A program made the translations under genes and the position numbers. Below the pieces are notes generated by a model. That model was not told the origin of the DNA. It worked only from the letters and a program-made list of their open reading frames with translations, and did no database searches. A stretch of DNA of 64,000 nucleotides. It comes from Perkinsus chesapeaki ATCC PRA-425. Taxonomy: Eukaryota; Protista; Perkinsozoa. The stretch is taken from contig JAAPAO010000017.1 of the NCBI GenBank assembly GCA_013115145.1, positions 62,001 to 126,000 on the forward strand, in the 5' to 3' direction. Each line of letters starts with the position of its first letter. Within the stretch, counting starts at the first letter, position 1. Below, one piece after another: positions 1-48,758 of the stretch.

Positions 1-430
1 AGCTCTCCTCGACCGCCTTCGTCCCTCGCCGAGCCTCCAGCGTATCTACAGGCTCCTCCGCGTCAACCTCTTCAACAGGCGGCCTGGACTTCCGTCTCTG
101 ACTCCTCTTCCGTTCCTTGACGGGCTCTGCCACCTCCTCCAGGCGCCGCGAGGACCGCCGTGCGCTTTTACGTCGCAGCTTGCTTTTTCGTGCCGCACTG
201 TGGGTCTGTCTCTCCTCGTCCTCTTCCCGTTCCAGGAGCCCGGCTCTCCCGAAGTCCGCGTCTGAATCCACAGAAACATCGGCAACCTTCTCCGGCCGCA
301 TCTGCGGTGGCGCTTCAACCCTCGCCGCCGCCGCCGGTTGCTCTGCAGTGGCAGCACGTCGGGCATTTTCCGCGAACAACGAGTGTGCCTGGCGAGTACA
401 GGGATGCAGTCCGGTAGAGCCGCGTGGCAT
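1..430 (-). CDS. Hypothetical charged low-complexity protein, partial (runs off the window start; may have upstream exons to ~700)
   Basis: Stop-free minus frame from ATG at 430 to the window edge (MPRGSTGLHPCTRQ...EEDEERQTHSAARKSKLRRKSARRSSRR...); R/K/E-rich with no recognisable domain. Confidence 0.5.
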   Translation of the reverse strand, partial: MPRGSTGLHPCTRQAHSLFAENARRAATAEQPAAAARVEAPPQMRPEKVADVSVDSDADFGRAGLLEREEDEERQTHSAARKSKLRRKSARRSSRRLEEVAEPVKERKRSQRRKSRPPVEEVDAEEPVDTLEARRGTKAVEES

Positions 431-856
431 GTGATAACCTACCATCTCGAGGATCCTATTAGATGACATAATATAAAGATCCAATTTATCTACAACTCGT
501 TCGAGCCTAAAGGACACTCATACTTCTATGGGACATCAGCTCGCTACCTGTCACAAAGACGATCCAGTCGGAGGTCTGTCAAGGATGCGACCGAATGCGG
601 CATCGCCCCTGCATGCACATTCGGCATGCGATAAGCGCTGCTATAGGGGTCATTTCTATCGTTGGTGACCATGTCCAAAGGGACCAGTAGCTACTCTGGT
701 TAGGGTAATTGACAACACAACAGTCTATCCTACATCACCAAGATCAATTGAATGCTGCACGTGCTCTTCATGGCCAACTTCCCCTGCCGTGCCCGATACT
801 GCACGGTGGTAGTCACGGCCTGCTAAGGCTCTGCGTCGATACAGTACTGGGAGCAG

Positions 857-3800
857 TCATCCAATTGGCGCATCACTAGTTCCGAAGAAGGTGCCAACCT
901 CAACGATGTCACCGAGGGAATCTACGGCAGCCCACCAAGAATGCTTCTCAGGTCTTGCCAAAGGCCGATAAGGCAGCACTGCTGCCACCACACCATTCAC
1001 CTTCACCACAACAGCGTTGCCTTCGGTGGAGGCCCTCATCTCTAGGACGTCACGCTCCTTGATGAACTGGGAGTCATCACCAGCAACCTCGCCAGTAGGA
1101 TTCCCATAGAGTCGGTGAACCACAAGCATGCCGAGGCTGTCCAGCTCATCGATGCTGGGTGCACCGGAAAGGCCATCATTGATCATACCGATCCCCTGGT
1201 CAGCTTGTAGCAATCCTACGGCGATTCCCCACGGTCTGGTGGGGTCCGAGACCGCATTGATGAGAACAGTAAAGCCACTACGGACGTCGATGGGGGAAGC
1301 GGAAATGCAGACCCCCTCAAGGCCTGTACCAGGCAGCTCGCTAGGGTGACCAGCACCGACAGTCTTAGGACCACCATGGACGAAGCTGACCAGGGGTAGA
1401 GGCGGGCGCCCAAATACTGAGCACTGAATAGTGGCCGAGGCATCCATGAGGTCCAGAATGCCCCACATGGAGCCGACTTCGGACGGCATGGCAGCATCAG
1501 AAAGCACCACTGCCTCAGCATTGACTTCCACCTGGAACCTGAAGAGCAACAATACCAACGATCTCCGCATCACATGCCAGATTACCTGCCCTCTTCAGTG
1601 AGGGTAACTCCGAGGACATCTCCTGGACGCAGCTTGCTAGGGTGGTAGTCACTATGGCAATCCACAAAAGCAGCTCCATTGAAGAGTTGACCATCATAGC
1701 CACACACAGCAACAACGCCTTCAACCTCATCAGCCGTTTCACAGCCCACCGTAACCGGTCTCGATCTACCAGCGGCCAGACCTATAGTGAGACCCGCGGA
1801 AGAGCCGCTACGTGAGCTGGTGCATTCACCGACATAGACCTCCAAGCCCCACGTGCCATCCGACCGCAAAGCGAGCGGGATAGGCACTACCGCAGGGCCA
1901 TGGGATGGGTTAGAAATGTCCGTCATGGCGATGCGGCCGCCCTCCAGAGGGACTAGCCTCTCAGATAGACTGCTCAGTCCGATATTTTCGGGGCAGGCTA
2001 CAGATATCGACTGAATCCGTCTGCACTGATGCCACAGTTCCACAGTGGCTCTGAGCTCCTCCTCCTCCTGCTGCTGGTGGTGATCCATGTAGGCTAGGAG
2101 ACGGCATACCAATACCTCGCCGGCATTGAGGGCCACATCACTACAGAGGACTGACTCAGGTGATTCATCATCATCAGGGGAGAAACTAATCATCATCTGG
2201 CCTGATCCCGATGAGTCTTTGAAAATCTCAACTGCAATGAGACAGGCATCCGCAGGAGGATGGCCGGTGTCCAAGCCAAGCGGTGCTGTGGCTAGGGCTG
2301 ATACCTCCTCAGACTGATCCAGCAACCTGTGGTTTGAATCTGCCGACTCGGTGTAATCCGATCGAAGATGGGCAGATGCGGCAGAGGAAGGCATATCACT
2401 TCCGGCGTCCTTTAGCGAACTACTCATCTCTGAGTTGTGGCTTTCAGATTCACTTCCAGGATCCGACTGATACTCTGGCCCATCAGACTCGGGCTCCCTT
2501 TTGTCACTGGTGCCTAGATTCCGTCGTCCAATCACTAATTGCATTTGAGCCCAGCCCTGAGCGAGGAACGCTGCCACCCCACCAGGTTCATCACCACCAT
2601 GAAACGGTTCCGTAAAACTGCTACGTTCTGAGATCTCCTGACTTGTCATCACTACACTCCCGCTGGATCCAGTTGCAGACCGAGGTTGTGCCGAAAGAGA
2701 ATCTTCGTCAGATGTAGGGGAGGCAGCGGCGCCATGCGCCCAATCTTCAGGATCGGATACGTCTGATCCAGAAGTATCGGAGATATCTTCAACATTATTA
2801 GCTGCGATGGCTCGATGGGTGGGTTCAGCTATCTTCGACTTCTGCCAAGACCCTTGGTTACTAACCGAGCCTATCTCCTCCTTGTGGCTTTGGTTACTAA
2901 CCGAGCCTATCTCCTCCTTGTGGCTTNNNNNNNNNNNNNNNNNNNNNNNNNNNNNNNNNNNNNNNNNNNNNNNNNNNNNNNNNNNNNNNNNNNNNNNNNN
3001 NNNNNNNNNNNNNNNNNNNNNNNNNATTGTGGCTTTGGTTACTAACCGAGCCTATCTCCTCCTTGTGGCTTTGGTTACTAACCGAGCCTATCTCCTCCTT
3101 GTGGCTTTGGCTACTAACCGAGCTCAGCTGCTCCTTTATAGAAGGTGAGCCAATAGACTGCATGCTCATTAGTCGTGAGCCCATCTCCTTCGGTGTGCCT
3201 TCGTTTAAAGACGTTCCACTCCAGTGACCCCTCCGATTGGCTACCCCTCCCTCTTCCACTGTCTGTCCAGCTGCTCCCCAACTGGTAGGCGCCGAGCTTC
3301 GTGGAGAACCCTTCTGTGGATTAGTTGCATCGACAATAACCATAGAAGGCGCATCCATCACTCCCGCTAAGCTCATCTTCACATCAACCAGTAGACCACC
3401 GTGCGTTTCCTCACCACTGTGTAGCAGGTCACTTCCAACCAGGTCATCACAGTAATTCGACTCAGCATCATGTCCGCGGCTCTCAGTGCCCTCATCGCCC
3501 ACGCCCGACTCTTCATGTATAGTCTCCACCTCGACCATCCCATGACCCAGTTCACTGTCCTCGTCACCATCACTGCCAAATGACTCTGCTAAGCTGTCAT
3601 CGACGCCGATCAACTCAGCTGCGAGCTGATCCGCTTCTTCCATTGGGGATTCTGTCGCCGTCAGACTGCTGCTAGTTGGTGATACCGACAGCAGTTGCCC
3701 TTCATCACTAGGTAAAGCCACCTCGACTACAGCACCTACACGTGACGGTCGGCTGAGAGCCTCCAGCAAGGCAGCTGAAACCCGTGCCATGGGCGAGCCG

Positions 3801-6165
3801 TTGCCGGTCTCACTGATAGCATCAGACCCGCGCCGAAGATCTCCCGATTCTTCACTGTCCGTGGCTACTGCAGCCATGCCTAGGCTGTCCGTGGCTACTG
3901 CAGCAACCGCCATGGTTTTCGGCCCTTCCACAGAGAGCGCGCGGTCACTGAAGCCCGCACCACCTAACATCTGCCCATCGCCGCTTTGGGATGAGACAGA
4001 GTCCTCCTCCTCCCCCTCTGACCCCGATAGCTCATCATCGCCATGGACACCTGACACATCACTCTCTCGATCAGATGTACTCATCGCAGGGGTGATAGGC
4101 AGCAGGCCAGTAACCTGCTCTGGGTTCTGGTCAGCAGCCGACTCATCCGAGGTCATCTCCCAGCTACTACCAGACGCCCCGTCAACCGAGTCATGAGATG
4201 ACTGGCTCTCTTCGACAGGTGGCTCCTCCTCCTCCTCCACGTCCTTACCTTCTTCATCTTCTTCAAACCGTACCTTCTTAACCGTGGCACTGCTGCCGTG
4301 GTCCTCTACCACACTTGGTCCCTGGTCGACATCCTCATCAATAACCCTCACATCTGTTCCACCGTGGCCGTTCACTACTCTAACCTCAACTACGACCCTT
4401 CTCTCTGACATGGGAGCCCGGCTGACACTACCACTGCCGACTTGATGGACTAGGCTCAAAAGCGCCTCCGAGTGTTGCTTTTGGACATCGATGACAGGCT
4501 TGAGGGCTTCCTGTAGGATAGTCAACGTGGGTGGCTCCTCCACAAGGGCTTCCTTGGCTTTAACTCGCTCGAGGGACGATCTCGTCGAATCAGCGGTGAG
4601 GTTGTCAACAGTGGTGACAGGCTGGGTGACAGAGCCGACGGCAGGCAGGGGAGGTCTGGTGATAATAGACACTGCATCACAGGTGCCCAATAGGTCCACT
4701 ACCGGCCAAAGCTTCTCATCTGCCGCTAGACTTGGCATCTGTGATGCCACTGCCATCTGCTGCCCATCAACATACAGGATAACCTTCATCGATCCTTCCC
4801 GCACCAGCAGACCTATTACCTGGCCTGCACGCAAGTCAGTCGGCCTCCACCCTGTCTGCTCGTACTCACCGATACTCGTGTCGAAGGACTGCCCATTGAA
4901 GCCCATCAACATGGCAGGCTGGGCCATCTCAGCAGCCAGCATCGGTGGCCTGGCCAACTGCTGCCTAAGTCTGACCACCCCCACCGTGAGCCCATCCAGG
5001 AACCTAGACTGGTCCACCATACGTTTAACCCTTAAAGCATAGTACCACCCCAGGCCTGGTATTCTCACCAATGGACCATCTCCCATTACTACTCTATGAT
5101 AGGGCTCATTGTGGTCGATGACAGAGGCCAGCTTACCGTCACTGGACAGCACTATATTCCGCCCGACCCTACTCCATGTCCCAAAGCATCTAGGCTTGCC
5201 AGGAGCCACTGAGTTATCGCTAGGAGGAGGAGGCAGCGAAGGGAACGGCAATAGTGACACTGCTTCGACCGAACCGCCGAGGTCGGCGTAAACGAATACA
5301 GCTCTGTCCAGCACCGGCAGCCGTGGGACCCTGCGTCTCGGAGGGCGACCAACTGACACGCTGTTGATGTAGACGGACAGGTAGCTGCCACCAGTGGCGT
5401 CATCAGGAGCGACCAAGAGACCAAGCCTGTCACCTACTGCTGGGGACCATGGCCCTTCCATATTGACCTCATCACCCTCCTCGACAGTCCATGCAACCGA
5501 ATCCTCCATCACCATAGCACCATCCGATGGCTTCCTCAGTAGCATGTCCGGGCTGCATAAGGTATACCCTATCCGAAACCGACTACCAGATGGTCGCTGC
5601 TCTGTCGAAGGCCTTAACCTCTTAACGCAGACCTCAAAGTACACCACAGCACCACCACGAACAGAGCATCTACCATTCCCATAAACTATTGTCCCATATG
5701 GGCAAGTTGCCAAAGCTATCTGGCCGCACTCTGACACTTCCACATTATGGCCCACAGCCTCCCTAGACCACGCTACTAGCTCAGACACCACAGCTCTCTC
5801 TTTAGCGTTGTACTTGCCGGAGCGATAGGCTAGAGCATCTAATCTACGTACTTCATCTTTTAGCCTAGCTTGTGTGCTTTCTATAAACGATAGTTTCTCT
5901 CGCATGCCGAGAGGCCTAAGCCAAATCCATCCAAGCCACCACCCACTCTCCCCCTGTACTACTACTCTGGCCGCTCTATACAATCCTGCTCCATACTTTC
6001 CGCTAACTCAGATGGCTCCAAATGTGACCATTCTGGCGCCCTCTTCTTCCTCGCCTTCGCCACTGCTGCCGATCCCCTGCCTAGCTGCCTCAATACATCA
6101 TCATAAGCGCCTCTAAGAGCCTCCATGTCCCCTTCCGTAAACATGTGGTATTTACTGATCGCCAT
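857..6165 (-). CDS. Large neuralized-homology-repeat (NHR)/SPRY-like protein, about 1700 aa, four beta-sandwich-like domains and an acidic linker
   Basis: ORFs 5962-6165, 2897-5983, 1582-2652 and 857-1573 join in frame through GT-AG introns 5916-5965 (50 nt) and 1539-1585 (47 nt), with the repeat-unit frame resuming across the N-gap. NHR-like motifs include GRNIVLSSDGKLA..GWYYALRV..DGLTVGV, GDRLGLLV..YING, GDVLGV and WPVVDLLG. Confidence 0.7.
2854..3124. repeat. 36-bp coding tandem repeat (SNQSHKEEIGSV on the minus strand) interrupted by an assembly gap
   Basis: Unit ttggttactaaccgagcctatctcctccttgtggct occurs on both sides of the N run; true copy number is unknown. Confidence 0.9.
2927..3026. 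other. Scaffold gap (100 N)
   Basis: Run of exactly 100 N inside the tandem repeat. Confidence 0.99.
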
Positions 6166-6463
6166 ACTTGGGCGGGAGGAGGAAGGCCTTCATCCAACAA
6201 CAACTACTCTACACTTCTATACCTTCCACAAATCTATCTTAAACCGTAAAAGGACACAAATTTTGAGTTACAGTTCCAACTTCCCTACCAAACAGTTCCC
6301 CAAGAACTTACTCTGTATTACAATGGAAAATTTGCTCGGAAGATAACGCCACGCTCGCCATATAACGCAAGTTCTAAATCACGGTTGATGAAACTGTCAG
6401 AAGTAGTACCAAGAATACATTCATAAAGCGTCAGAAAAACAACAACAAGGAAGATGAGGAGGC

Positions 6464-7716
6464 TTACAGCTGCCACTGGAACTGAATGGTGAAACCGTCG
6501 CCATTGGACTCATACCGACGAGTGAAGTGACCATCGGAAAATGTCGAGGACTCGGAGTGGTCACCGCCGTCGTCATTACTGGCAGAGCACAGGTCATGGG
6601 ATGTCATCTTAGCTCGACAGATCGGACAGGTCGGGGCACGCCTCAGCCATCTACGCCCACATTCTTCATGAAGATAGTGTCCACAGCTCATCTTGTAACT
6701 GATAAGTGATGACCTAGACTGACTCAATGCCCGCGTACAATAGTTGCCATTCGATACCGCTAAGATGCATGCACCTTATCTAATACGCTTTATGTTGGTC
6801 CACAGACTGGGCATATCGACCAACCGACGTCCTCATTGTTTATTATTGCTTCGCCTCTACCGTATTCCCCTCAGTATTACCATTTATCTCCTATATTATA
6901 TTCCTCCATGCATATGGCACATGCCTCCCCCACTATACCATCCCCATCCTCCAGCTCAACAGCTGATACCCCCTCCAAGGACTCTGGAGTCCCTAAAACG
7001 ATATATGCTCTTTCACATAACGCACATTTGCAAGCTCGAAATCCCTTCCCAAACCAAGTCGGGTAAATCGCTATTCTGGGTTCCCGATGTCGCGCAGGAA
7101 GCCACTTAGATTTCCCACTTGAAACGCGATACCAATAAGGCCCATGTTACCATCATTAGTGTCCCACAGATGTGCCGCCTTCTCCTCTCCAAGCACCTCT
7201 ACCAGAAGGGCATTGATCCTCTCATCCAGAGCATCTGGATCCTGTCGCAATGAGGATGGTATTCCTGCCGTTGCCGAAGATATCCTTTCCGCCTAAAACC
7301 GACCTTATCAAGCTCTAAAACCACTATTACAATTCCTCCCATGAAAGGGACCCATGACAGGTAGTGGCTGGCGAAGTAGTTAACCCTATCAGCAACACCC
7401 AGGGCGGCTTGGACGGCCTCGGGGTACCTGTCACCACCGATCAGCAGCGATGGTGACCAGCGGTGGGGTACTACGTCCGAACCATTATCTGTGTTATTCG
7501 AGCGAGAGCTGTTGCCTCCTCAGGATTAGTCTCCGCGAAGCCTATATAGTAAGGAATGGGCACTTCTATCATATACTGTATGTTACCAGCAAATCTCTGG
7601 GCTATGGTGCTGAATAGGCCATCTGGATTGGTACTGGACTCGGGTGAGGTTACAGGCTCATCTGGACTAGTAGAGGAGGAACTACTCACTTCCTCTATAT
7701 TAACCATTATAAGCAA
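6464..7716 (-). CDS. RING-H2 zinc-finger protein, probable E3 ubiquitin ligase (multi-exon)
   Basis: An exon encodes EACAICMEEYNIGDK and the last exon encodes KMSCGHYLHEECGRRWLRRAPTCPICR, giving a C3H2C3 RING-H2 pattern. The N-terminal exon is 7471-7716. Confidence 0.8.
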
Positions 7717-8997
7717 ACTTCAAAGTCGAAGCTAGCCTCTTGCCCGAGGAATCCAAAGGATCATGCGCAGAAACTAAAAATTGGTGAACGTGAGTCGCTT
7801 CGCTCCGCTTTTAAAATGTAAAACGCGCGCGCCTACACCACAATACCATATTTCTTAGTAAGCTCTTCTTCTCGCGAACATGTAACGATAACTACTGTAA
7901 ATAAAAGCATTACGTTTTTGTTACCTCTACTAGAACATCTGCATGTCAAACCCCTCTGGGACCTCATTTGAAAAGCCCACTACGGGTTACCACTGGTAAC
8001 TTACCAGTATAGAGATTTATCGATCTGCGCAATGTCTCCTATACCATATTTTGAGCGAATTCTCTGTCTTTGACGGTGACGAGTTTTCCGCCGTTTGAAG
8101 AGGCCCCCTTCATTATCCATATTCAGGTATTAATTCCCATGACTAAACGGTCGTCAGGAAAGAGGCGGTCCGCCGAAGACACTTCTCGTGACGGTGGCTC
8201 CTCACCTGAGAAGGTCACTCCAGCCCAGGCCGAGACCAGACAGGCTGTAATTGATAGAAATAACGCATTTGCCGTGGCCGATACCAAAGTCCATGGGGCG
8301 GCCCGACCGACGAGATGTCCTATCAGAAGTGGCGTAGCCGTATAGTGACGGCTTTAAAGTTGCCATGTCTTAAGGAAGGCAAGGCGGGAGTTTACTACGT
8401 GTTGAGGTGCTTGAAGGACCCTGTCTTTGGGGAGGTCTGTCGCATGGCTCTCGATGGTCTCACCACCGAGCAGATCATCGATAGGCTGGATAAGCGCTAC
8501 GGTCATAGTGGTGACACCAGGGACTTGCTGAGGGAGTGGTATTTAATAAACCAAGGGGAAGATGAGGAGCCGGCTCATTACGCTACGAGGATCTCGGCGT
8601 TGGTGAAGCTTATTAGGGATGTTGCTGGCATTACTGTAGGCTACAGTAATGCCAGCAACATCCCTGCTGCTAAGCAGCATGGGAAATTCAAGGGAAGTAT
8701 GTAGGGACTTTAATACCAGAATTGAGGGACAAAGTTGAATGGGTATTGGGCCCCAAGCAGTCCAGTCTTGAGGAGGCGTCTGAGGTCGCTCAAAGGCAAT
8801 GGGAGGGTATGGGCAAGACCAAGGATGAGGTCATGGTCGATAGGGATGGCAAAAGCACGGATCCAGTGGACAGGCTCCCTCTGTGTCTGGATCCTTGGGG
8901 ATGATACCCGTACGCCGTCTACTAATGAAGTGCTTTAGCACTCTAAAGGGTGGTGGTCGGGGATGGAGGTGGAACAGGATAAGGGTATGGATTAGAG

Positions 8998-9342
8998 ATG
9001 GAAGGATATAGGGTTCAAACCTTTCACAAGGCTCCTGTGATGGTTGACTCGGGCTCACAAACCACTCTCACTGGGGATCTCTTCTCCCCCCAGACCCTGA
9101 TGGCTTCCCTAGCATTTGCTTCGTGGCCATCAGACTGGGGGCTAGGGATCCAGGTGAGAGGGTTTCTGGACGAGATATTTGGTAATCCTTTTTTTAATAA
9201 CCAGTCCTACCTTGATGTCATTCGTAACGAATGGCATCAAAGGGAAGAATACTATCGTTTGTCCCTTTTAGGGGCATACGAGAATCGGTACTATTCCTTT
9301 AAAGATGCTCCTTCCGATGACTCGTCTATGCCGCCTAACTAA
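8998..9342 (+). CDS. Retropepsin-like (retroviral aspartic protease-like) ORF inside the disrupted gag paralog
   Basis: VMVDSGSQTTL matches the D-S/T-G active-site motif; IFGNPFF resembles the C-terminal hydrophobic-hydrophobic-G motif; 114 aa is retropepsin-sized. Confidence 0.4.
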   Translation: MEGYRVQTFHKAPVMVDSGSQTTLTGDLFSPQTLMASLAFASWPSDWGLGIQVRGFLDEIFGNPFFNNQSYLDVIRNEWHQREEYYRLSLLGAYENRYYSFKDAPSDDSSMPPN

Positions 9343-9346
9343 ATCT

Positions 9347-9486
9347 TCATCATCATCATCATCATCATTGTTACTGTACTTGTCATCACCATCATCATCA
9401 TCATCATCATCATTGTTACTGTACTTGTCATCACCATCATCATCATCATTGTTACTGTACTTGTCATCATCACCATCATCATCATC
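9347..9486. repeat. Compound (TCA)n microsatellite/minisatellite, three units
   Basis: (tca)n-ttgttactgtacttg-tcatcacca repeated three times. Confidence 0.9.
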
Positions 9487-10246
9487 TATGTGGGGATCCT
9501 GGAACGGTGCTGCTGCTGGTGGGCTATCATATTCATTATTTAAATTTAAAGTAATGGATACTGTTAAGTTATCTGGGCTTAGTGATAGGGAGGCCAGAAG
9601 GTACCTGTTGCGGTGCTTGAAGGGGCCAATTAGGCAGCAACAGGTTAAAAAGTGGGTTAAAGGAGGGCTACCATTCAGCACTATAATGGCCTGCTTGGAC
9701 AAGCAGTTCCTTCGGGAACGTAGAGGCTTTGGGGTTTTTGATGAGTGGAGGGAAATTCACCAGGAGGAAGGGGAGAGCCCTGAGCACTTTATCCCGGATA
9801 TATATCTTTATCCCCTTATTTATTTAAGGGGAGGATATCGGCCTATGTCAGGGCGATTAAACAGGAACTTCACTTTGAGATACAGCCACCGGAGCAGGGC
9901 TTCCGGTTCCTGGAGGGGTTCGTCCGACCGATACGCTTCAAGCTTTCGCTGGACTTCATGAGAACTACTAACCCGACGATAGACGTTATTATGCCCAAGG
10001 CGTCGTATTATTGGAATTTGGAGAGGAGGAGGGAGATTGACCCCACCAGGATGCCCTGCAACTTTTATGCCGACGAGCACAAGTGTCGGTTTGGAGTTAA
10101 CTGTCGGTTTAGGCACATCGACAGTATCTGGTGATCATTGCTGACACACCGGAATAAGATTGTATCAACCCTTTTCGCGCTCATGTGGTTGGTGGTTGTT
10201 ATTGCGATGCTGAGTTAGCCAAGTGGCAGGTGTTGTTTCTTTGGCC

Positions 10247-11506
10247 ATGAGCCGCATTCGATTCGACTCGGACGATTGTTCTCCGTGGAGCGCCACGTTG
10301 ATTTTACGGCGAGAGGACATTAAGCCGTGGGGTGGTCCTACAGAGGAGATGTCTTATCAGGAATGGAAAAGCAAAATTGAGTTTGAGGTCAGGGACTCCT
10401 ATGGATTCCGCGGCCAGGAGATTCTCCGCCTCCTTAACTACCTGAAGGATCCTGTCTTCGGAGAGGTCTGTCGGTGGGCTGTTGAGGGCCTCACCATCCA
10501 GGACATATTCCAGCGGTTGGATGAGCGGTATGGGTATAGCGGGGGGCCTCGGGAGGCCTTTGAGAAATGGTCAACATTGAAGCAAAGACCGAAGGAGAGT
10601 CCTTTTACATTTGAGTATAGAGTAAGTTCACAGGCAAGGCTTATTAAAAGGGTTACTGGTAACGAACTGAGCGACGCCGAGATAGGTTACAAATATAGAA
10701 GCGGCCTCCTGCCGAACCTGAAGGAGTACGTGGATTACCATGTGGGGCCAGAATGTGGGAACATAGACGAGATTAGGGAATGGGTTATTAATTACTGGCA
10801 CATTTATCCCGATCAAACGCTTAATAAGTCACCGAGCCATGAAACAAAGGCAGGGGAAGAAGAGCCGGACACGGATACTGTCGAGGCGCTGCCGTTGTGT
10901 GTTGCACCGTGGAGTGGGAGGGATGATGGTATGCCGCATGAGATGTGGAAGATGATAGTGTCGGATACAATCAAGGTGTATGGGCTGAGGCCGTGGGAGG
11001 CCGATCAGTACATCAATCGTTGCCTCACTGGAAGAGCACTGCAGACAGCGAAGTCCTGGGGTGTTTACGGTGCTGATGAGAAGTTTGAGAAGCTGAAGGA
11101 GTGGCATGGCTCCTACCGGCAGTTTGGTGTCCATGAAAAGTGGTATCGAATGGCGGAGCGAGACGGGGAGAGCCCGGATACGTTTTATGGGAGGCTGATG
11201 GCCTATGTTCGAATGTTGAGGCATGAGCTGGGGGAGGACTTGCCGGACAAGGAGGTAGAGTTCAGGTTTAAACAGGGACTGAAGCCGGAAATAAGGGAAG
11301 AGCTCGATGAGTACTTTGCACGCTTTCCGGATGAGAATCCTCAGACTACCGAGAAGATGCTGGAGGTAGCATCGTTTTATTGGGAGCTTGCCAGGGGGAG
11401 AGCTGGCCATCAGGGAGGGAAGCGATGCCGGTTCTATTTCCAGCCTCAGAAGTGCCGGTTTGGGGACAACTGCCGATTCGAGCACCAGAGGAAGATTGGG
11501 GTCTGA
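10247..11506 (+). CDS. Intronless Gag-like protein: two tandem capsid-like domains plus a C-terminal CCCH zinc finger, about 419 aa
   Basis: Two internal repeats each carry an MHR-like motif (LKQRPKESPFTFEYRV; AERDGESPDTFYGRL) and a downstream Y/F..GL.P motif (YRSGLLPNL; FKQGLKPEI). CRFYFQPQKCRFGDNCRFEH fits C-x8-C-x5-C-x3-H. Confidence 0.75.
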   Translation: MSRIRFDSDDCSPWSATLILRREDIKPWGGPTEEMSYQEWKSKIEFEVRDSYGFRGQEILRLLNYLKDPVFGEVCRWAVEGLTIQDIFQRLDERYGYSGGPREAFEKWSTLKQRPKESPFTFEYRVSSQARLIKRVTGNELSDAEIGYKYRSGLLPNLKEYVDYHVGPECGNIDEIREWVINYWHIYPDQTLNKSPSHETKAGEEEPDTDTVEALPLCVAPWSGRDDGMPHEMWKMIVSDTIKVYGLRPWEADQYINRCLTGRALQTAKSWGVYGADEKFEKLKEWHGSYRQFGVHEKWYRMAERDGESPDTFYGRLMAYVRMLRHELGEDLPDKEVEFRFKQGLKPEIREELDEYFARFPDENPQTTEKMLEVASFYWELARGRAGHQGGKRCRFYFQPQKCRFGDNCRFEHQRKIGV

Positions 11507-12247
11507 GGGGATATGTTTCCCCACAAAAAGGCCTCGGTCTAATTTATCTTTTTAGAAGGTTGCATTGTGTTTAGTAATCACCAGAGACCACTATGGGTAG
11601 CTTCAGTAGTGTCTTGTAGAAGGATACCTGTGACCTGGGGCAATTTAGCTGTTATCCTTTACTGTGGGCCTAGCGTATAGCCTATCGTATAGGCCTTCAG
11701 GTCGAGGTAATCGAGACCGGATTGTTGCACCCTGTTGTAGAAGATAGTAGCGAGGGACGAGGGACGATATGGGCGGATGTCTCTCGTCGAATAACGTGTC
11801 TACGGTTACAGAGCTGCTGGCTGCAATTAGAACATTTTTCGTTTGTGAATTTTTAATAAGAGTGAGAGCTCAGGTCTCCATGGAGGGTTTAACGGGCGCG
11901 CAGTGGCGGCGGAGGAAGTACCAGGAAAGCTACTTTTCGGGAATGCAACCTTAAACTCTGTCAAGACACACACTTGCGGTTGAATGTTCGAACCATGCGC
12001 CATGGTGGCGCTGGGGAAGTTAGGGCTGCTTAGCGAGGAGGAAGGAAGTGTTGTGTCTGATGTTGAAGCTGAGTTGTAGAGGAAATGTTTGATAGTGTGT
12101 AGCTCTTGACAAATGACAAGTTGGATGTCGTAGTGTTGTGTTGTTCATTTCGGGTGGGGGTAGATGAGCCATATTGAGCACTCAAAGGGGGGGCCTGCTG
12201 CAGTGTTTTGGCCTCCGTGGCTTAGTGAGGCTTCCTTTTGGTAACTA

Positions 12248-15200
12248 TGGTGAAGGAGGAGAAGAAAGTGAAGAAGGAAAAAAAAGATAAGAAAGTTAAA
12301 AAAGAGAAAAAAGAGAAAAAAGACAAGAAGGAGAAGAAGGACAAGAAAGAGAAGAAGTCCAAGACCACAGCCACCAGCAGTAGCCGGCCAGGTACCAAGG
12401 CCCCTGCTGCACGGAAACCGAGGGCAAAGAAGGTAGTAAGGCCGCTGCTGAGGTACCAAACTTGTACCTGGCAAGGGGGATCATGTACGGCCATTACGGT
12501 CATGGTTGTAGCCCTGGTTAGGCCGTGATGGCGAACTTGGGAGTGGATAAGGCTGTTATGGAATCACATACCGACTTCTATCATTTTAGGGGTGAAACGG
12601 AGCTAGTATAGTAGTGCGTGAAGTATCTTATTTACTGTAACCCTAGAGCGTTTACACATCCACATTTATGTGTTGATGGGCACTGTGGAGCAGTCTGGTG
12701 TGTTAGGAAGGAGATGCTAAGTCGGCAACTGGTGGTAGGAAACGGAAGGCAATAGTGAGGACTGAGGAGGACTTTGAGCCCTTTAATAGATGGTGGGAAA
12801 AGGATCCCGAGGTACTACTGAGGAAGGGGGCGTTCGCCTTGGACGTGATGATATTGGAGGTAGTGGAACTATAACAGCAGGAAGTAGTATAGTATCTTTT
12901 ACTATTGTAGTTGTGGTTGAACATCTATAGTGTTGTTTCTATAGGATACCGATAAGAAGTGGAACTATCTAGAGCATCACGGTATGATGTTCACCCCACC
13001 CTACGAGGCTCATGGTGTGAAGATGCTGTAGGAGTGTAGTGGGGGAGCTGGGTGGCAATCCCTGTATGACAGGTATAATGGTGAACCAGTAGATCTACCA
13101 CCAGAGGCAGAGGAGGTCGCAACGTTCTTCGCTCAAACCTTAGGTGAGATGCTGTTGGTCACTATACGGGTATAAGTTTCTTTATGAGTGAAGGCCTCTG
13201 TTCTCTTCTGTCTAGGCCTCTATTTTGTTGGTTGTAGTCTACAACTGGGAGAGTGGCCCCATAGACAGCTCTAAAAAGGCAAAATGGAATTTAGCTTCTA
13301 GTAGACATAACCATCTAACATTATAGAACTTGTCACTTAAACCACCGGCCTTGGTGTCTAGTGCACCAGATGATATAACCATTTGTACGTCTTTAATCCC
13401 GAGGACCGATGCTTCGATTATACGGCCGCATAATTAGTGGTACGTACTGTGTCCCAGTCTGTGTGGTAGATTGTACTAGGTAATAGAGATACCCTACAGA
13501 TGTAGCGTTATCGGAACCGGGAAAGGTCAAAACACCTTCCGAATTATACGAGGATATGTGTGAATGAACTCCCTCTATGCGACACCATAATTTCCGCCAT
13601 AAACGGTTTCCATAGCTCTGTCAACTTCTCGACGCGCGAAGATAGTATTTTGACTTTGCCTGATGTCCTTTCATGACATTCGAGGAAGGGTGGTTTGATT
13701 GGGTCGCCTCAGGGACGGACTGGTGCCAAAAGGAGAAATTCCAGGACAACTTCTGGACAGATTTCCAGACTAAACTGCCCACGGAATTGAAGTCCAAGAT
13801 AAAGGATTTTAAGAAGTAAGTCGTGGGTTCGATCCCTGGGGAGGGTATTTTATTCAGATGTGATTTCGAGCCAATCAAGAACTTCTTGGATAAACGTAGC
13901 GAAGCTAAGAAGGCTCGGACTAAGGAGGAGAAGGAGGCAGAAAAGGAGAAGAAGCAACGGGAGGATCATCCCTATACCCATGTTATAGTGGACGATCTGA
14001 GGGAAAGGTAAACCCATGGACAGACGGCGATACTGGACGCTGCCAGAGAAGGAACTTATTCTGGTGTGGGTGTTCGTAATGTTACAGTACGAATTAGTAA
14101 TTCTCGAAGGTTATAAGAATTTGAGTGGCTGGTATGGGTTCGAGTAGTTTAGACGTCGTTGTGGAGTCGTTGATTATGTGAGTTGAGAATATAATTAATA
14201 GGATATATTATACCGGCATTCCAGCTGCTCCTGCTCCTGCTCCTGCTGCTGCTTCCATGGTATCTCAAATGGTATGGTATACAGTACGGGTATTAGTAGT
14301 CTGTTGAAGATAGGCTTGGTGATGGTGCGGATCAATTCGTGTCTTGTGATAACTTAACACTCGGTGGTGGTGGTAAATTTTGATGAACGTCAACGGGAAG
14401 AATTGTGGAAATCGATTCGATGACAATTTGTGGGAAAATCTGCTCTAGGCAAGGCTTTGTTTCGTTGTTTAGAGTTGGCAACTTCCGTGTGGAGCCACCT
14501 AATCTCTTCCGAGGTCGAGGAGACCATCCCAAGATGGGCAAGCTGAAGCAGTACATTATGCCAGAGGATGTCACCGTCAATTGTGCAGCTGACGCTCCGG
14601 CGCCGAGAGTAGACTTGGTAGCGAATATGTGAGTGTCATGCCCTCGCTCATGCTCAGTGCCCAGTGCCGGGCCATGCCTACCGCGACGTTGTGCACGACC
14701 CTGCTGTTACATGGCTGGCGTGGTTCACTGATACTATCAATAATCAATTCAAGTAAGAAACGGTAAGATATTCTTTATAGTGCGATTGATCGATGAAGAT
14801 ACGTATTCTTAAACGCTGCGAGTGGATTCAAGGGACAAAGTGATTGGCTGAAATACGAGAAGGCACGGAAACTAAAGAAGTGAAATAATAAATGGTGGGG
14901 TTAGTGTGTTGGAAGGCACGGTTGTTGCTGGCAGGTATATTGGAGGTATTAGAGCTGATTATACGAAGAAGATGAAGTCAAGTGATAACGATGAGAAGCA
15001 GCTTGGTACGGCAGTGTACCTTATTGATAGGCTGGCATTGAGGGTAAGGAAGAGGTCGTCAGGAATAACACCTCCAAATGGGATCATTCGCTACCGTAGA
15101 TCGACTTAACTCGGTTGAGCTCGGTGTTGCGGTAATTGGTCGGTAAGCCTGGCTTAACTATTCATATCTATTAAGGGGAATCCTGTTAGTGGCATACTGC

Positions 15201-16922
15201 TGCTGTTCAGGTTGGTAATGAGAAGAACACTGACGAGGAGGCGGATACTGTGGGCTGCTGTAAGGAATCTCTAATGCCTGCTTTCAACACAATTTACCAT
15301 CTCAGGCAGCCTGCGAGTAGAGCACATGACATTCGAGCCTGATAATCAAATCACACTCGATTTCCTCGGCAAGGATTCCATCCGCTATTTCAATACTGTC
15401 CCCGTTGATGCGTAGGATTGGCTGGGAGGAGCGGCGAACTGTTATTGCCTATGCCAGACTGGTTTATAAAAATCTGAAGTCGCTCACTAAGGGACGGAAG
15501 CCGGATGAGATGATATTCTCCATGGATCCCTCCAAGGTCAATGAGTACTTCAAGCAGTTTATGTCGGATCTCTCAGCGAAGGTTGGCAGGTTGATTCCCA
15601 TCTGCCCTCGACCGTTGATGTTTCAGGTCTTTCGTACCTATAATGCCTCGATTACGCTGGAGCAAGAACTGTGTAAGTAGACAGTTAAAAGGCTTCCTGG
15701 TTATCGAGCCGTGTATATATTTTACTTGGCACGTTGATTATTCAGTAACCGTATGTACTTGCTCGTATCCTATAGTTACATATACAGCCCCTCACAATGA
15801 AATAGAATATTTCGTACTTTCAGTTCTCACTCAATCTTCAGTGTTGTAGCTTGAAATTCTAAGCAAGAGCAGTAGAATGAGAATCGAAACCGTGACACCA
15901 ACGTTGTTGCATTCGATCATTTACTAGTTACTGCTATTATCTACTAACATGCTTCCTATTGCTCGACGGTATACAGTGGAATCGGGTGGTATGTTAGTGT
16001 GGTCAGTGGTGTCTGCAGCAACTCGGTTTGTGTCATAACCACGGTTCGGCAACAACATAAGATGCGCTGTACTAGGTTAAGCGCTGCCGTGGTGTCGGTT
16101 ATTCTAGTTTGAAATATCTCACCATACAGAGAAATCTATGCGTCTACCAATAGGCATGTCTCAGGCAAGTTTGATCCGAATGAGCATGATATTAGTGACC
16201 CTAGTGAGCTGGTGAAGTTCTATAACGATGCCAATAGAAGAGTCGCCATTTTGTGTAACCATCAGGTGAGCCACTATTACTTATATGCTGCACACTTGTC
16301 TGCTATTTAGAGAGCTCCACCGAAGCAACATGAGGCAGGAATGGAGAGGCTCAAAAAGAAGCTTAGCGATCAGGAGGTCGCTCGCCATACCGAATTCTTC
16401 TCTAATCGTGCCCGTCTTTATTAGGCAGTCCTACGGGGCCTGGAAGGTCTACGGGACGAAGAGCTTGGCAAGAGCGTCTCGAAGACAGTAAGCATCCCGT
16501 AGGAGCGTTGAGAAGAATGCCTGCCCGTTCAGGTTAAAGATATCATTGCCGAGAAGAATCTTAAGTTCTCCAACATGGACGCGTTAGTTCGGAAGATTAA
16601 ATCTCAGACTTTAGCAGGTAGGAATGCATTTCGGGCGATGCTGAGGTGAAGCTGTCGCTTTAGTGGAGCGAACTAAGATTCAAATAGCGGACAAAGAAGA
16701 CAATAAAACCGTGTCACTGACTACCTCCAAGATCAACTATATGGACCCCAGGATATCTGTTGCCTTCTGCAAGTCCCTCGACTGCCCAATAGAGAAGGTG
16801 GGTCGACTAGTAAGAGAAAGAGCCTCTGTTGGATATTCGGCTTCGGTCTTCAGATATTTGCGAAGACTATTCGGAACAAGTTCCCATGGGCGATGCACAC
16901 AAAGAGCTCGTGGAGGTTTTAG
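12248..16922 (+). CDS. TOP1: DNA topoisomerase I (type IB), multi-exon
   Basis: K/E-rich N-terminus; [110 protein letters not shown] and catalytic [10 protein letters not shown]; stop TAG at 16920-16922. Confidence 0.97.
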
Positions 16923-35564: not shown

Positions 35565-36677
35565 CTAAGGACCGGGCTTTAGCTTGGCAACACCCAGTCT
35601 GTTATCGACCGGTTGAAACTCAATATAGTTACCGACAAGTGCACCAGCAGGAAGTTGCCAAGTGTAACCCTCCAGAGGCATGATCATAACAGTGCAGGGC
35701 TGAGCTCCTACAAACTTTCTCACATAACCTTGAGATGAGATTTCCAAAGGGACATCCCCGTCTGGTCCGAGATAAAAGGTTAATGATGGCAGATACTTCC
35801 TTAAGGGGCAGTCCACTATGTAACTATTTCTTTTTCCATCAAATACGATATCTACTTTCTGGCCACGGATGTTGGAGGCCGCCCCAGCAAGCGCCTGTAC
35901 CAAGCCAGTGGAATATATGGATGGAATTCGAATGTAGTTGTCTCCAGTACGAATAGTGGCTCTCTGGTTGATCCCCAGAGTTGTTCTTCCTGCCTGTATG
36001 GACAGACTGCGTAGCTCTACAACGTAGTCATCAATACTTAGCAATGGTACATAACGTAATGGAATCACGTATTGTGTTGGATCCACTCCTCCCAGGATAA
36101 GTTTGCCACGGAATATATCAGATTCCTTAGTCGGTCTCAGAAAGAGAGTGAAAGTTGCCGTTTTCAATACCCTCTTGGACCTCAGCTGGTCCATTAGTGA
36201 AAACCCAGTTCCGTCGATGTCAGGTTTGAGACCAAGATAGTTAGCTGATGGGAACATCGGGGGAGGAGGGTCTTGGCCACCAATTAAACCAAAAGAGATA
36301 TCATCTGCACCAAATACGTTAGCGGAGTATTCGAATGCAAACAACTGAGTGTTGCGAACCTTGAATACTCTGGGGGGACCACGAGGGTCGGAGCAGGAGA
36401 AGCAAACGAACATGAAAGTTCGACACGCTCCCAGGCCTGTGAATAGTTCATACCACTCTTTCCAGACCAACAGAGTCGACGTCGAGCCGGTATCAACTAT
36501 AGCAACCATAGGTTGTTTATTCACACTCAAGGGACCATAGATAGCATAACCGGTTCGAGGGGATTCCCTATAGGTTATGCCCAATGACATGACCGTGCCC
36601 TCAGACTTGTTTGCCATCATGGCACAGATTAGGCATACCAGGATTAGTTTCATATATCCAAGCAGTTCGATGTACAT
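35565..36677 (-). CDS. Intronless pepsin-like (A1) aspartic protease homolog with a signal peptide; second catalytic Asp missing
   Basis: VAIVDTGST, NYLGL, ATFTLFL, GKLILGGVDPTQY, ATIRTGD (normally DTG), LPSLTFYLG, GALVGNYIEF..NRLGVAK. Confidence 0.88.
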   Translation of the reverse strand: MYIELLGYMKLILVCLICAMMANKSEGTVMSLGITYRESPRTGYAIYGPLSVNKQPMVAIVDTGSTSTLLVWKEWYELFTGLGACRTFMFVCFSCSDPRGPPRVFKVRNTQLFAFEYSANVFGADDISFGLIGGQDPPPPMFPSANYLGLKPDIDGTGFSLMDQLRSKRVLKTATFTLFLRPTKESDIFRGKLILGGVDPTQYVIPLRYVPLLSIDDYVVELRSLSIQAGRTTLGINQRATIRTGDNYIRIPSIYSTGLVQALAGAASNIRGQKVDIVFDGKRNSYIVDCPLRKYLPSLTFYLGPDGDVPLEISSQGYVRKFVGAQPCTVMIMPLEGYTWQLPAGALVGNYIEFQPVDNRLGVAKLKPGP

Positions 36678-47643: not shown

Positions 47644-48758
47644 CTAGGGCTTTAGCTTGGCAATCCCCAATTTCATTTCGATCGGTTGGTATTCAATATA
47701 GTTACCGACAAGCGCACAAGCAGAAAGCTCCCAAGAGTCATCCGCGACCTCTGTGATCATAACAGTGCATAACCGGTCTCCAGCATACTTTCTTACATAA
47801 CCCTTAAACGAGATTTCCAAAGGAACGCCTCCATTTGGTCCGAGATTGAAGGTTAGTGTTGGCATAAATATCCTCGAAGAGCATTCCATCCGGTATACTT
47901 CTTCCTCTTCATCCCATTTGATATCGACCACCGACCCACGGATCGTAGAGGCAGCTGATGCGAGTTGCTTCGCCATAACAGCGAAATGCGGTTGTGGAAT
48001 CCCGATGTATTTGTCACCAGTATGAATAGTGGCTCTCTGGTTGATCCCCAGAGTTGTTTCTCCTGCCTGTATGGACAGACTGCGTAGCTCTACAACGTAG
48101 TCATCAATACTTAACAATAGTACATAACGTAATGGAATCACGTATTTTGTTGGATCCACTCCTCCCAGAATGAGATTACCAAAGAATACATCAGGTCGTC
48201 CAGTCGGTTTCAGAAAGAGAGTGAAAGTTGCCGTTCTCAATACCCTCCTGGATCTCAGCTGGTCCATTAGTGAAAACCCAGTTCCGTCGATGTCAGGTTT
48301 GAGACCAAGATAGTTAGCTGCTGGGGAAATAAGGGGAGGTGGGTCTTGGCCACCAATCAAACCGAAAGAGATCGGACCCACACCAAGAACTTAGCTTCGT
48401 ATTCAAATACCACCACATCAGCCTGGCCGACTTGGAAAGTCATTCTCGAACCATGAGGGCAAGGTTCGGGACAGGAGAAGCAGGGGAATATCGAAGTATC
48501 ACAGGCACCAGGGTGGGTTTCATTTTCGTACCACTCTTTCCAGACTAACAAAACTGACCTCAACTTGGTATCAACTATAGACCTCATTCTCCCCCCATTG
48601 ACGGCCATGCTACCATATATGCCGTACCCTTCTTCCGAAAGCTCTTTGTAAAATATATCGAGTGCGATACCTTTACTCTCGGACTCACTCATTGCCATGA
48701 GCCAGATGAGGCATATTAGCATTGGCTTCACATACGAGCAGCAGAATCGAGAAGTCAT
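47644..48758 (-). pseudogene. Pepsin-like aspartic protease paralog with a 1-nt frameshift near 48385 and both catalytic motifs altered
   Basis: Highly similar to 35565-36677. A single-base loss in GCT AAG TTC TT GGT shifts the frame; the motifs read IVDTKL and ATIHTGD. Confidence 0.8.

Follow-up and report, generated by a model that had tools for sequence, protein, structure and literature searches.

In a 64,000-nucleotide stretch of the Perkinsus chesapeaki genome (hereafter the window), we identified an intact gene, ORF419, that is almost certainly derived from a retroelement gag: it encodes two capsid (CA) domains in tandem and an inherited CCCH zinc finger, and it carries no pol. We tentatively propose that ORF419 is a solo gag that arose from Perkinsus LTR elements, was retained by the host, and may act on the Gag or RNA of related elements. 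The reading frame begins with an ATG at 10247 and ends with the last base of its stop codon at 11506, and these coordinates, together with the single-exon gene placed here by the public annotation (Perkinsus chesapeaki GCA_013115145.1, contig JAAPAO010000017.1), agree exactly with the intact, intronless ORF of 419 aa described in the initial annotation of this DNA. At the local base composition, an open run of 419 codons has a chance of ~2e-10. By GC3, ORF419 was not separable from host exons. The features of the locus, in window coordinates, are:

247..7707 and extending further, minus strand: large RING/Neuralized-domain gene, the divergently oriented upstream neighbour
8139..10134, plus strand: upstream tandem paralogue (unit 1-like, unit 2-like, CCCH finger), not collinear as it stands
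10247..11506, plus strand: ORF419 (protein P0001), intact intronless pol-less gag-derived gene, 419 aa plus stop
10301..10825, plus strand: CA-like unit 1, aa 19–193 (HMMER domain bounds; hhalign; match to polyprotein Gag regions)
10826..10885, plus strand: acidic linker joining units 1 and 2, aa 194–213
10886..11401, plus strand: CA-like unit 2, aa 214–385 (AF2 model, Foldseek, hhalign, collinearity with the Gag of P0004)
11426..11485, plus strand: CCCH zinc finger C-x8-C-x5-C-x3-H, aa 394–413 (Pfam PF18044)
12247..16922, plus strand: topoisomerase I (TOP1), the intron-rich downstream neighbour

The ORF had been described as two homologous repeats, and HMMER recovered both as full units of ~170 aa (aa 19–193 and aa 214–385). 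The motifs assigned to them earlier, PW(G/S)G..W, a Y..CL helix, Q/E-x3-E-S-P..F..R and (Y/F)..GL.P, can all be seen in the alignment of the units. Compared with each other, the two halves of ORF419 share 29% identity over 140 aa (E 4e-15). Six residues follow the finger before the stop codon.

To what family the units belong was clearest from profile searches. A profile built only from the units in the window retrieved 138 proteins from a library of 1.84 billion, and its best non-self matches were Perkinsus Gag-Pol polyproteins carrying the unit at their N-terminus (P0004, E 3e-21; P0008, E 3.5e-12; P0009, E 3e-11; P0011, E 3e-10, all in that library). The matched polyproteins bear gag-asp_protease, RVT_1, Pao peptidase, RNase H and integrase domains; the profile thus finds the Gag region of confirmed Gag-Pol proteins, in keeping with the earlier proposal that the gene is Gag-derived. 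Unit 1 matches the Gag region of P0008, P0011 and P0004, and unit 2 is collinear with the Gag of P0004 (28% identity, E 4e-20). Across the family, 91 of 121 relatives match Pfam PNMA, and others match Retrotrans_gag, Ty3_capsid and zf-CCHC.

That both repeats are CA domains was supported by hhalign for each unit and by Foldseek for the model of unit 2. Against PNMA-type Gags, hhalign gave a probability of 97.1% (E 5e-11) for unit 1 alone and 93% for unit 2 alone. The AF2 model of unit 2 (pLDDT 86) has nine helices arranged as 5 + 4, with the Q/E-x3-E loop between them, and Foldseek matched it to PNMA2, dArc, Arc, MLV, Copia, Ty3 and Ty1 capsids, nearly all of the top matches being retroelement capsids. 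Unit 1 is predicted to share the capsid fold, given its hhalign match (97%) and its homology to unit 2; a single-sequence AlphaFold model was unusable (pLDDT 39). All four units in the window contain the Q-x3-E...R motif at the position of the major homology region, at the lobe junction, and in the unit 2 model this motif forms the loop preceding the first helix of the C-lobe. Across the 121 relatives, conservation of its Q and E columns is 90% or more, and in 24 PNMA-type Gags both columns are invariant.

No Pfam Gag family matched ORF419 or either of its halves at E up to 10, which indicates strong divergence, and the upstream copy matched Pfam PNMA at E 0.01, below the cut-off. The window-only unit profile gave E 0.08 against PNMA2, a value that on its own falls short of significance. 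When the ORF419 protein was compared with PDB sequences, all matches were CCCH proteins, and word-index protein searches, whether with the whole protein or with the unit alignment, recovered no proteins other than those of the window.

The finger scored above the Pfam gathering cut-off for PF18044 zf-CCCH_4 (30.9 bits with the whole protein and 32.9 with its second half; cut-off 24.6), a regular expression confirmed C-x8-C-x5-C-x3-H at aa 394, and its closest solved examples are cellular CCCH proteins. The initial annotation was therefore right to call it a true CCCH finger but wrong to treat it as peculiar to this gene, as a resident BEL/Pao-type Gag carries CCCH fingers as well. CCHC knuckles follow the capsid in 79 of 142 relatives; ORF419 has none, and a CCCH finger takes their place, as it does in P0004, P0005 and P0006. 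In P0004 (KAF4650813.1, P. chesapeaki), two CCCH fingers come directly after the CA unit, the first of which aligns with the finger of ORF419. The same genome thus holds a BEL/Pao-type element in which protease, RT and integrase come after a CA unit and CCCH fingers. Related elements in the P. chesapeaki genome still have long open polyproteins (P0004, P0011). To judge from this alignment, the ORF419 finger is inherited from the resident Perkinsus BEL/Pao-type family. In the literature, which we covered in part, no CCCH-bearing Gag and no tandem CA-CA Gag was described, and novelty is not proven by this.

We then asked what surrounds the gene. The initial annotation had placed TOP1 ~740 bp downstream; an exon-by-exon search found Topoisom_I_N, Topoisom_I and Topo_C_assoc there, with the gene starting 741 bp beyond ORF419. 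It had also reported no pol, LTR or integrase beside the ORF, and searches of the whole 64-kb window bore this out. Using tblastn with four Perkinsus polyproteins, only their Gag parts matched in the window, and near the ORF419 locus no pol match was better than E 1; the window's long ORFs contained no pol domains. No LTR-like direct repeats flank the gene, either within 6000–16000 or in the whole window, in searches that LTRs below ~65% identity would escape, and no terminal repeats were found around ORF419 or the tandem pair.

The double-CA layout was confined to this gene. Of the 144 relatives that the 1.84 billion representatives yielded, with or without pol, ORF419 alone had two full units, so the many double-CA/CCCH copies attached to pol and LTRs that would mark a truncated transposable element were not seen. 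No annotated proteome contained a second copy of ORF419 at 50% identity or above, only the tandem neighbour is closer to it than 30% identity in the P. chesapeaki genome, and neither P. olseni nor P. marinus has an annotated two-unit ortholog. P0005 and P0006 were considered as possible orthologs and dismissed: in P. marinus a longer Gag-protease-RT element begins with P0006, and P0005 comes from a short contig, where it adjoins a Pao-type pol. P0017 of P. olseni, alone among the relatives in lying on a long contig, is not syntenic, as it sits at a contig end with unrelated genes alongside. By bit scores and an NJ tree, units 1 and 2 are about as far from each other as each is from Gags of different resident families, and a simple internal duplication is therefore not demonstrated. 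The locus also has a conflict-like pattern, with a lineage-specific gene, tandem birth and decay, and related elements in the genome.

ORF419 had been presented as a lone gene. This did not hold, as an older tandem copy of the whole layout lies directly upstream (8139–10134). This paralogue changes frame three times and is interrupted once, by ~0.6 kb; the annotation splits it into two small genes, P0003 (221 aa) and P0002 (126 aa). We left its frames unjoined and compared the pieces with ORF419 as separate rows. On this comparison, ORF419 and the paralogue form an old tandem pair in which ORF419 is intact. Between the copies, pS was 0.70–0.82, which is saturated, and pN was 0.39–0.51, the reference being the tandem paralogue, with no ortholog pair of unsaturated dS; dN/dS values are unreliable because dS is saturated. 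The combination of saturated synonymous sites and lower pN suggests that ORF419 has probably been kept open by selection, an argument that presumes the two copies diverged in place. There are 202 possible single-base changes that would create a stop in ORF419, and under neutrality the probability of acquiring none falls from ~1e-3 at 0.1 substitutions per site to 5e-8 at 0.25. Decay or fragmentation of the neighbouring copy indicates that the locus is not uniformly protected. From these patterns of substitution we consider it rather likely that ORF419 has been maintained by selection, although part of the constraint may date from the period in which these sequences belonged to a mobile element.

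We propose the following origin and mode of action. ORF419 would be a solo gag gene descended from Perkinsus LTR retrotransposons, with a C-terminal half (unit 2 and the CCCH finger) collinear with the resident BEL/Pao-type Gag and an extra, complete CA (unit 1) in front. Its ancestor would have lost protease, RT, RNase H, integrase and LTRs, and the gene would now be set among ordinary host genes. If purifying selection has kept it open, then it is host-retained, that is, co-opted. Wang and Han (2021, PMC8321522) recognise co-opted gag genes by shared synteny or a host-congruent phylogeny, and by signs that the coding sequence is under natural selection. Against co-option on the first of these counts, P. 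olseni and P. marinus have no annotated ortholog with this layout. Domestication is plausible on the sequence data, with ORF419 a candidate host-retained capsid gene. The protein may keep both activities of Gag: capsid–capsid association, here through a covalently linked CA pair, and RNA binding through the CCCH finger. Like Gag-derived restriction factors, it would most likely target resident elements related to it, through their Gag or RNA, and it would co-assemble with the capsid lattice of these elements and disturb that lattice. Drt2, a Ty1-derived restriction factor, provides a precedent (PMC10951436). We infer interference with resident elements as the function of ORF419 with considerable doubt. 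The nearest resident Gags share only 23–28% identity with ORF419 and may be too distant for co-assembly.

Other histories could leave a similar locus. ORF419 could be functionless, one of two old gag fragments that remained after pol and LTRs were lost, and either decaying more slowly than its neighbour or younger than it appears. The disrupted state of the adjacent copy, with its frame changes and interruption, would fit such a remnant, as would the lack of annotated orthologs in the sister species and the strong divergence reflected in the non-significant Pfam Gag models. However, pN relative to the paralogue is clearly below the saturated synonymous divergence, and an unconstrained frame of 419 codons would be nearly sure to gain stops at the divergences given above. 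In addition, both units retain every column conserved across the family, and the finger still scores above the Pfam cut-off. We regard a remnant as fairly unlikely. A gag-only mobile element, non-autonomous and copied in trans, would instead account for an open frame through selection for mobility. In favour of this, ORF419 lacks introns and is limited to Gag, and the genome contains related autonomous elements, but neither the gene nor the pair has LTRs or other terminal repeats, the annotated proteomes hold no further copy at 50% identity or more, and the sole same-genome relative closer than 30% identity is the tandem neighbour. Such an element is the least probable of these histories.

ORF419 could also be a co-opted capsid of the Arc/PNMA2/PEG10 type, which would form closed shells of linked CA pairs, package RNA through its CCCH finger and serve a cellular purpose unrelated to transposons. 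The best structural matches of the unit 2 model are assembled PNMA2 and dArc capsids (TM 0.51–0.60), each unit appears to have two lobes, and a finger of an RNA-binding type is retained, all of which agree with this model. Known genes of this kind, however, are conserved over long host lineages (PMC8321522, PMC10516033), whereas ORF419 is lineage-specific and its twin has decayed, and we therefore think such a role improbable. The reading that we favour, if tentatively, is still that of a host-retained solo gag directed against related elements.

Host-retained pol-less gag genes have been described in animals, plants and fungi (Arc, PNMA, RTL/SIRH, Fv1, Ty1 p22/Drt2 and Crtg); one survey reported none in alveolates and called protists under-sampled (PMC8321522). 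ORF419 would add a case from Perkinsus, a parasite of molluscs (oyster, clam) related to dinoflagellates and apicomplexans. It would also add the CA-CA-CCCH layout, unique to it within 1.84 billion representatives, and a resident BEL/Pao-type family with CCCH instead of CCHC in the nucleocapsid position. In its strongest form, our proposal would make ORF419 a CA-CA-CCCH Gag kept by selection as a built-in dimer that caps or poisons BEL/Pao and Ty3-type lattices, or that builds shells with a geometry unknown from single-CA Gags, and hence the first co-opted gag of an alveolate and the first CA-CA tandem; we hold this to be unlikely. If expressed and conserved, ORF419 would be a natural, covalently duplicated capsid protein, with bearing on how lattices tolerate or use subunits that are fused, and on the ways in which a host can direct capsids against their relatives. 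If unexpressed, it would be merely an unusually well preserved gag remnant.

Among the closest known proteins, P0004 shares with ORF419 a CA unit collinear with unit 2, a CCCH finger next to it and a genome in common. It differs in its single CA unit and its two fingers, followed by protease, RT, a Pao peptidase region, integrase and an EVE domain, whereas ORF419 has two CA units, one finger and no pol. The finger itself has the canonical spacing of CCCH fingers (PF18044 / PF00642) and scores above the gathering threshold; LTR elements normally have CCHC knuckles in the nucleocapsid position, where ORF419 has a single CCCH. Ty1 p22/p18, Drt2 and Fv1 are, like ORF419, Gag-only and lineage-specific and coexist with related elements, and the fold matches of the unit 2 model include Drt2 (PDB 9rxy) and the Ty1 CA-CTD. 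However, p22 and Drt2 consist of a CA-CTD fragment only and Fv1 of one CA, and neither a pair of full CA domains nor a CCCH finger occurs in any of them; restriction has been demonstrated for p22, Drt2 and Fv1, whereas for ORF419 we infer it.

The PNMA family, also pol-less and Gag-derived, is the best profile match for both units and the Pfam family to which most relatives belong, and PNMA2 (PF14893; PDB 8rb3, 8uyo) is the best structural match to unit 2 (TM 0.54/0.60). ORF419 itself falls below the Pfam PNMA threshold, and PNMA proteins have one CA only, carry an RRM-like domain at the N-terminus and in some cases bear CCHC knuckles; they also differ in being vertebrate genes conserved in synteny. 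Arc, dArc1 and dArc2, which are domesticated Ty3-type capsids, likewise resemble ORF419 in being pol-less gag genes with a bilobed CA fold (TM 0.51/0.60 to assembled dArc capsids). They have one CA and no CCCH finger, and their particles and RNA transfer are experimental, whereas ORF419 is known from sequence and model. dArc1 and dArc2 also form a tandem pair, as do ORF419 and its upstream copy.

ORF419, a pol-less gag-derived gene, lies on the part of Perkinsus chesapeaki contig JAAPAO010000017.1 (assembly GCA_013115145.1) covered by the window, in the following arrangement:

8139-10134 (+): upstream copy, directly 5' of ORF419, with a unit 1-like and a unit 2-like domain and then a CCCH finger
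10247-11506 (+): ORF419, 419 aa with no internal stops, publicly annotated as a gene of one exon
ORF419 aa 19-193: unit 1, a complete copy by the unit profile
ORF419 aa 214-385: unit 2, a complete copy by the unit profile
ORF419 aa 394-413: CCCH finger, C-x8-C-x5-C-x3-H, scoring higher than the zf-CCCH_4 gathering threshold in Pfam
741 bp 3' of ORF419: start of topoisomerase I (TOP1), identified by an exon-by-exon domain search
Other side of the ORF419/upstream-copy pair, opposite strand: large RING/Neuralized gene

The initial annotation had described an intact ORF built of two repeats and ending in a CCCH finger, with TOP1 about 740 bp downstream; its coordinates were exact, and the rest of this description was borne out. 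The two halves are homologous (140 residues aligned, 29% identity, E 4e-15) and connected by a short acidic linker, and every short motif it had picked out is visible in the alignment of the units. On the - strand, an ORF of 231 aa (10829-11524) runs antisense to the second half of ORF419; it probably arises incidentally from the purine-rich coding strand (GC skew of +0.24 across 10-14 kb) and is probably not a gene. The first exon of TOP1 (12238-12528, +) encodes a Lys/Glu-rich, low-complexity N-terminus on a 9-nt periodic repeat.

The upstream copy, which repeats the whole ORF419 layout, had been overlooked. Comparing its pieces separately with ORF419, without joining frames, we found 32-43% protein identity. 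As it stands, the copy is not collinear with ORF419, from which it differs by three reading-frame changes and one interruption of ~0.6 kb that holds about 3.3 copies of a 45-nt tandem repeat. This repeat reads serine-rich on the + strand and Asp/Gly-rich on the - strand, and just before it lies a 114-aa ORF without a Pfam match. The public annotation spans the frame changes by means of three short introns (GT..AG) and makes two genes of the copy: P0003, of 221 aa, and P0002, of 126 aa. The P0002 model omits part of the homologous unit, so in the upstream copy the second unit, at least, is now incomplete.

Curated Pfam models and a sequence search of the PDB matched only the finger of ORF419, and word-index protein searches returned nothing beyond the window's own proteins. 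Since ORF419 was still unidentified and the claim about it leans partly on an absence of relatives, we ran an exhaustive HMMER search with a profile made solely from the window's four units (E up to 1e-3). This profile matched 138 proteins, and its best non-self matches all came from Perkinsus. Several of these, 1300-1800 aa long, are polyproteins that carry the unit close to the N-terminus and continue with an aspartic protease, a reverse transcriptase, an RNase H or Pao-peptidase region and an integrase. This arrangement identifies the unit as the Gag domain of LTR retrotransposons resident there, of the BEL/Pao type (P0004) as well as the Ty3 type (P0008, P0009 and P0011). The distant matches are typical Gag proteins, with a CCHC knuckle after the unit in 79 of 142; Pfam matches among 121 relatives were PNMA (91/121), Retrotrans_gag (11) and Ty3_capsid (3). 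Many of these distant relatives (e.g., P0023) are PNMA-type Gags from metagenomes and from bivalves such as Mytilus galloprovincialis; the bivalve proteins may reflect either the common ancestry of Ty3-type Gags or an exchange between the parasite and its mollusc host.

The capsid identity proposed for the repeats held for both units in profile comparisons with 24 aligned PNMA-type Gags from outside Perkinsus (unit 1 alone: probability 97.1%, E 5e-11, 152 columns; unit 2 alone: probability 93.0%, E 4e-7), and for unit 2 in its predicted fold as well. AlphaFold, given a 121-sequence alignment consisting mostly of PNMA-type sequences, produced a confident model (pLDDT 86.1) spanning unit 2 and the finger, the latter poorly modelled. 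Unit 2 forms five helices, a loop carrying the conserved Q/E-x3-E motif and four further helices. In a Foldseek search of the PDB, its matches were nearly all retroelement capsids, with a modest best E of 5.9e-4: PNMA2 (TM 0.54/0.60), dArc1 and dArc2 (0.51/0.60), then Arc, MLV, Copia, Ty3, BLV, HERV-K, HIV and RSV. The C-lobe alone matched PEG10, MOAP1, Ty1 and Drt2, and a fold search of a viral library returned metavirus ORF1, retroviral Gag and caulimovirid coat proteins. Unit 1 would take the capsid fold by homology.

The finger can be traced within the same elements. In P0004, a BEL/Pao-type polyprotein of 1678 aa from P. chesapeaki itself, the unit occupies aa 109-275 and is followed, ahead of the protease, by CCCH fingers at aa 292 and 349; P0004 aligns collinearly with ORF419 across unit 2 and the first finger (E 4e-20, 28% identity). 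The unit-plus-CCCH layout recurs in two proteins that likewise belong to elements: P0005 (P. olseni), whose 7.9-kb contig also carries an adjoining Pao-type pol, and P0006 (P. marinus), whose DNA runs on into protease and RT. The C-terminal half of ORF419 is thus a standard Gag of that lineage. The finger is inherited from resident elements, and the unusual feature of ORF419 is the extra complete CA domain ahead of the standard half. In P. marinus (GG685356.1, 7435-9516), P0006 is entered as a hypothetical protein of 334 aa (Pmar_PMAR007742); it forms the beginning of a longer, under-annotated Gag-protease-RT element that is 38-64% identical to P0004. After its integrase, P0004 (JAAPAO010001175.1) carries an EVE domain (aa 1545-1643; PF01878, 23.5 bits against a 23-bit cut-off), a position that may hold a targeting module reading modified nucleic acid.

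The absence of pol and LTRs noted earlier also stood. Across the 64 kb, four Perkinsus polyproteins matched by their Gag parts only, and only at the four units; nothing else near the locus scored better than E 1; the window's long ORFs contain no pol domains; and no direct repeats were found flanking ORF419 or the tandem pair. Two aspartic proteases further along the window are of the cellular pepsin type. Their ORFs (Pfam Asp; 35565-36677 and 47644-48381, both -) lie exactly 12,073 bp apart in DNA blocks 75-91% identical, a segmental duplication of a host gene. Many double-CA/CCCH copies joined to pol and LTRs would have marked ORF419 as a truncated element; since it alone among 144 relatives has two full units, and protein searches found no protein at least 50% identical elsewhere, annotated proteins reveal no such family.

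Piece by piece, ORF419 and the upstream copy differ at pS 0.70-0.82 and pN 0.39-0.51, and with synonymous changes saturated, the nominal dN/dS (0.2-0.3) cannot be relied on. Single-base changes create a stop in 202 of 3771 possible cases, so under neutrality the chance of ORF419 staying open is ~1e-3 at 0.1 substitutions per site and 5e-8 at 0.25. The copies lie head-to-tail about 110 bp apart, suggesting that they diverged where they lie; if so, selection would have kept ORF419 open for most of that time. The double-unit layout predates the tandem duplication, as the upstream copy shares it. The distance between units 1 and 2 is about the same as that separating them from Gags of different resident families, and the layout could reflect internal duplication or fusion of two gag genes, the comparison favouring neither. 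Published criteria for co-opted gag genes combine shared synteny or host-congruent phylogeny with selection (PMC8321522). Neither P. olseni nor P. marinus has an annotated two-unit ortholog to provide the former, and ORF419 speaks to selection only indirectly.

Our results show that ORF419 combines a pair of capsid domains with a single CCCH finger of the type that a resident element family carries in the nucleocapsid position, and its protein would keep capsid-capsid association and RNA binding. We tentatively rank interference with resident elements first, because ORF419 is lineage-specific, its locus shows tandem birth and decay, and related elements with long open polyproteins coexist with it; against this, the nearest resident Gags are only 23-28% identical. 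Slightly less probable is a functionless remnant. An Arc/PNMA-like particle former is unlikely, for all the resemblance of unit 2 to those capsids, and the gag of a non-autonomous element, in a locus without LTRs, is more doubtful still.

ORF419 descends from LTR-element Gag and would work like it. It is not a complete element, as pol and LTRs were sought and not found; it falls below every threshold of the curated Pfam Gag families, and it differs from the usual LTR-element Gag in having no CCHC knuckles. Ty1 p22 and Fv1 are Gag-derived restriction factors. Drt2 is another (PMC10951436), and the evolutionary pattern of ORF419 resembles that of these three more closely than that of the Arc/PNMA/RTL genes, which are deeply conserved whereas ORF419 is confined to its lineage. 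We found no report of a co-opted gag in this host lineage in the accessible literature. What would be new in ORF419 is its CA-CA-CCCH architecture, likewise undescribed there for a pol-less Gag-derived gene.
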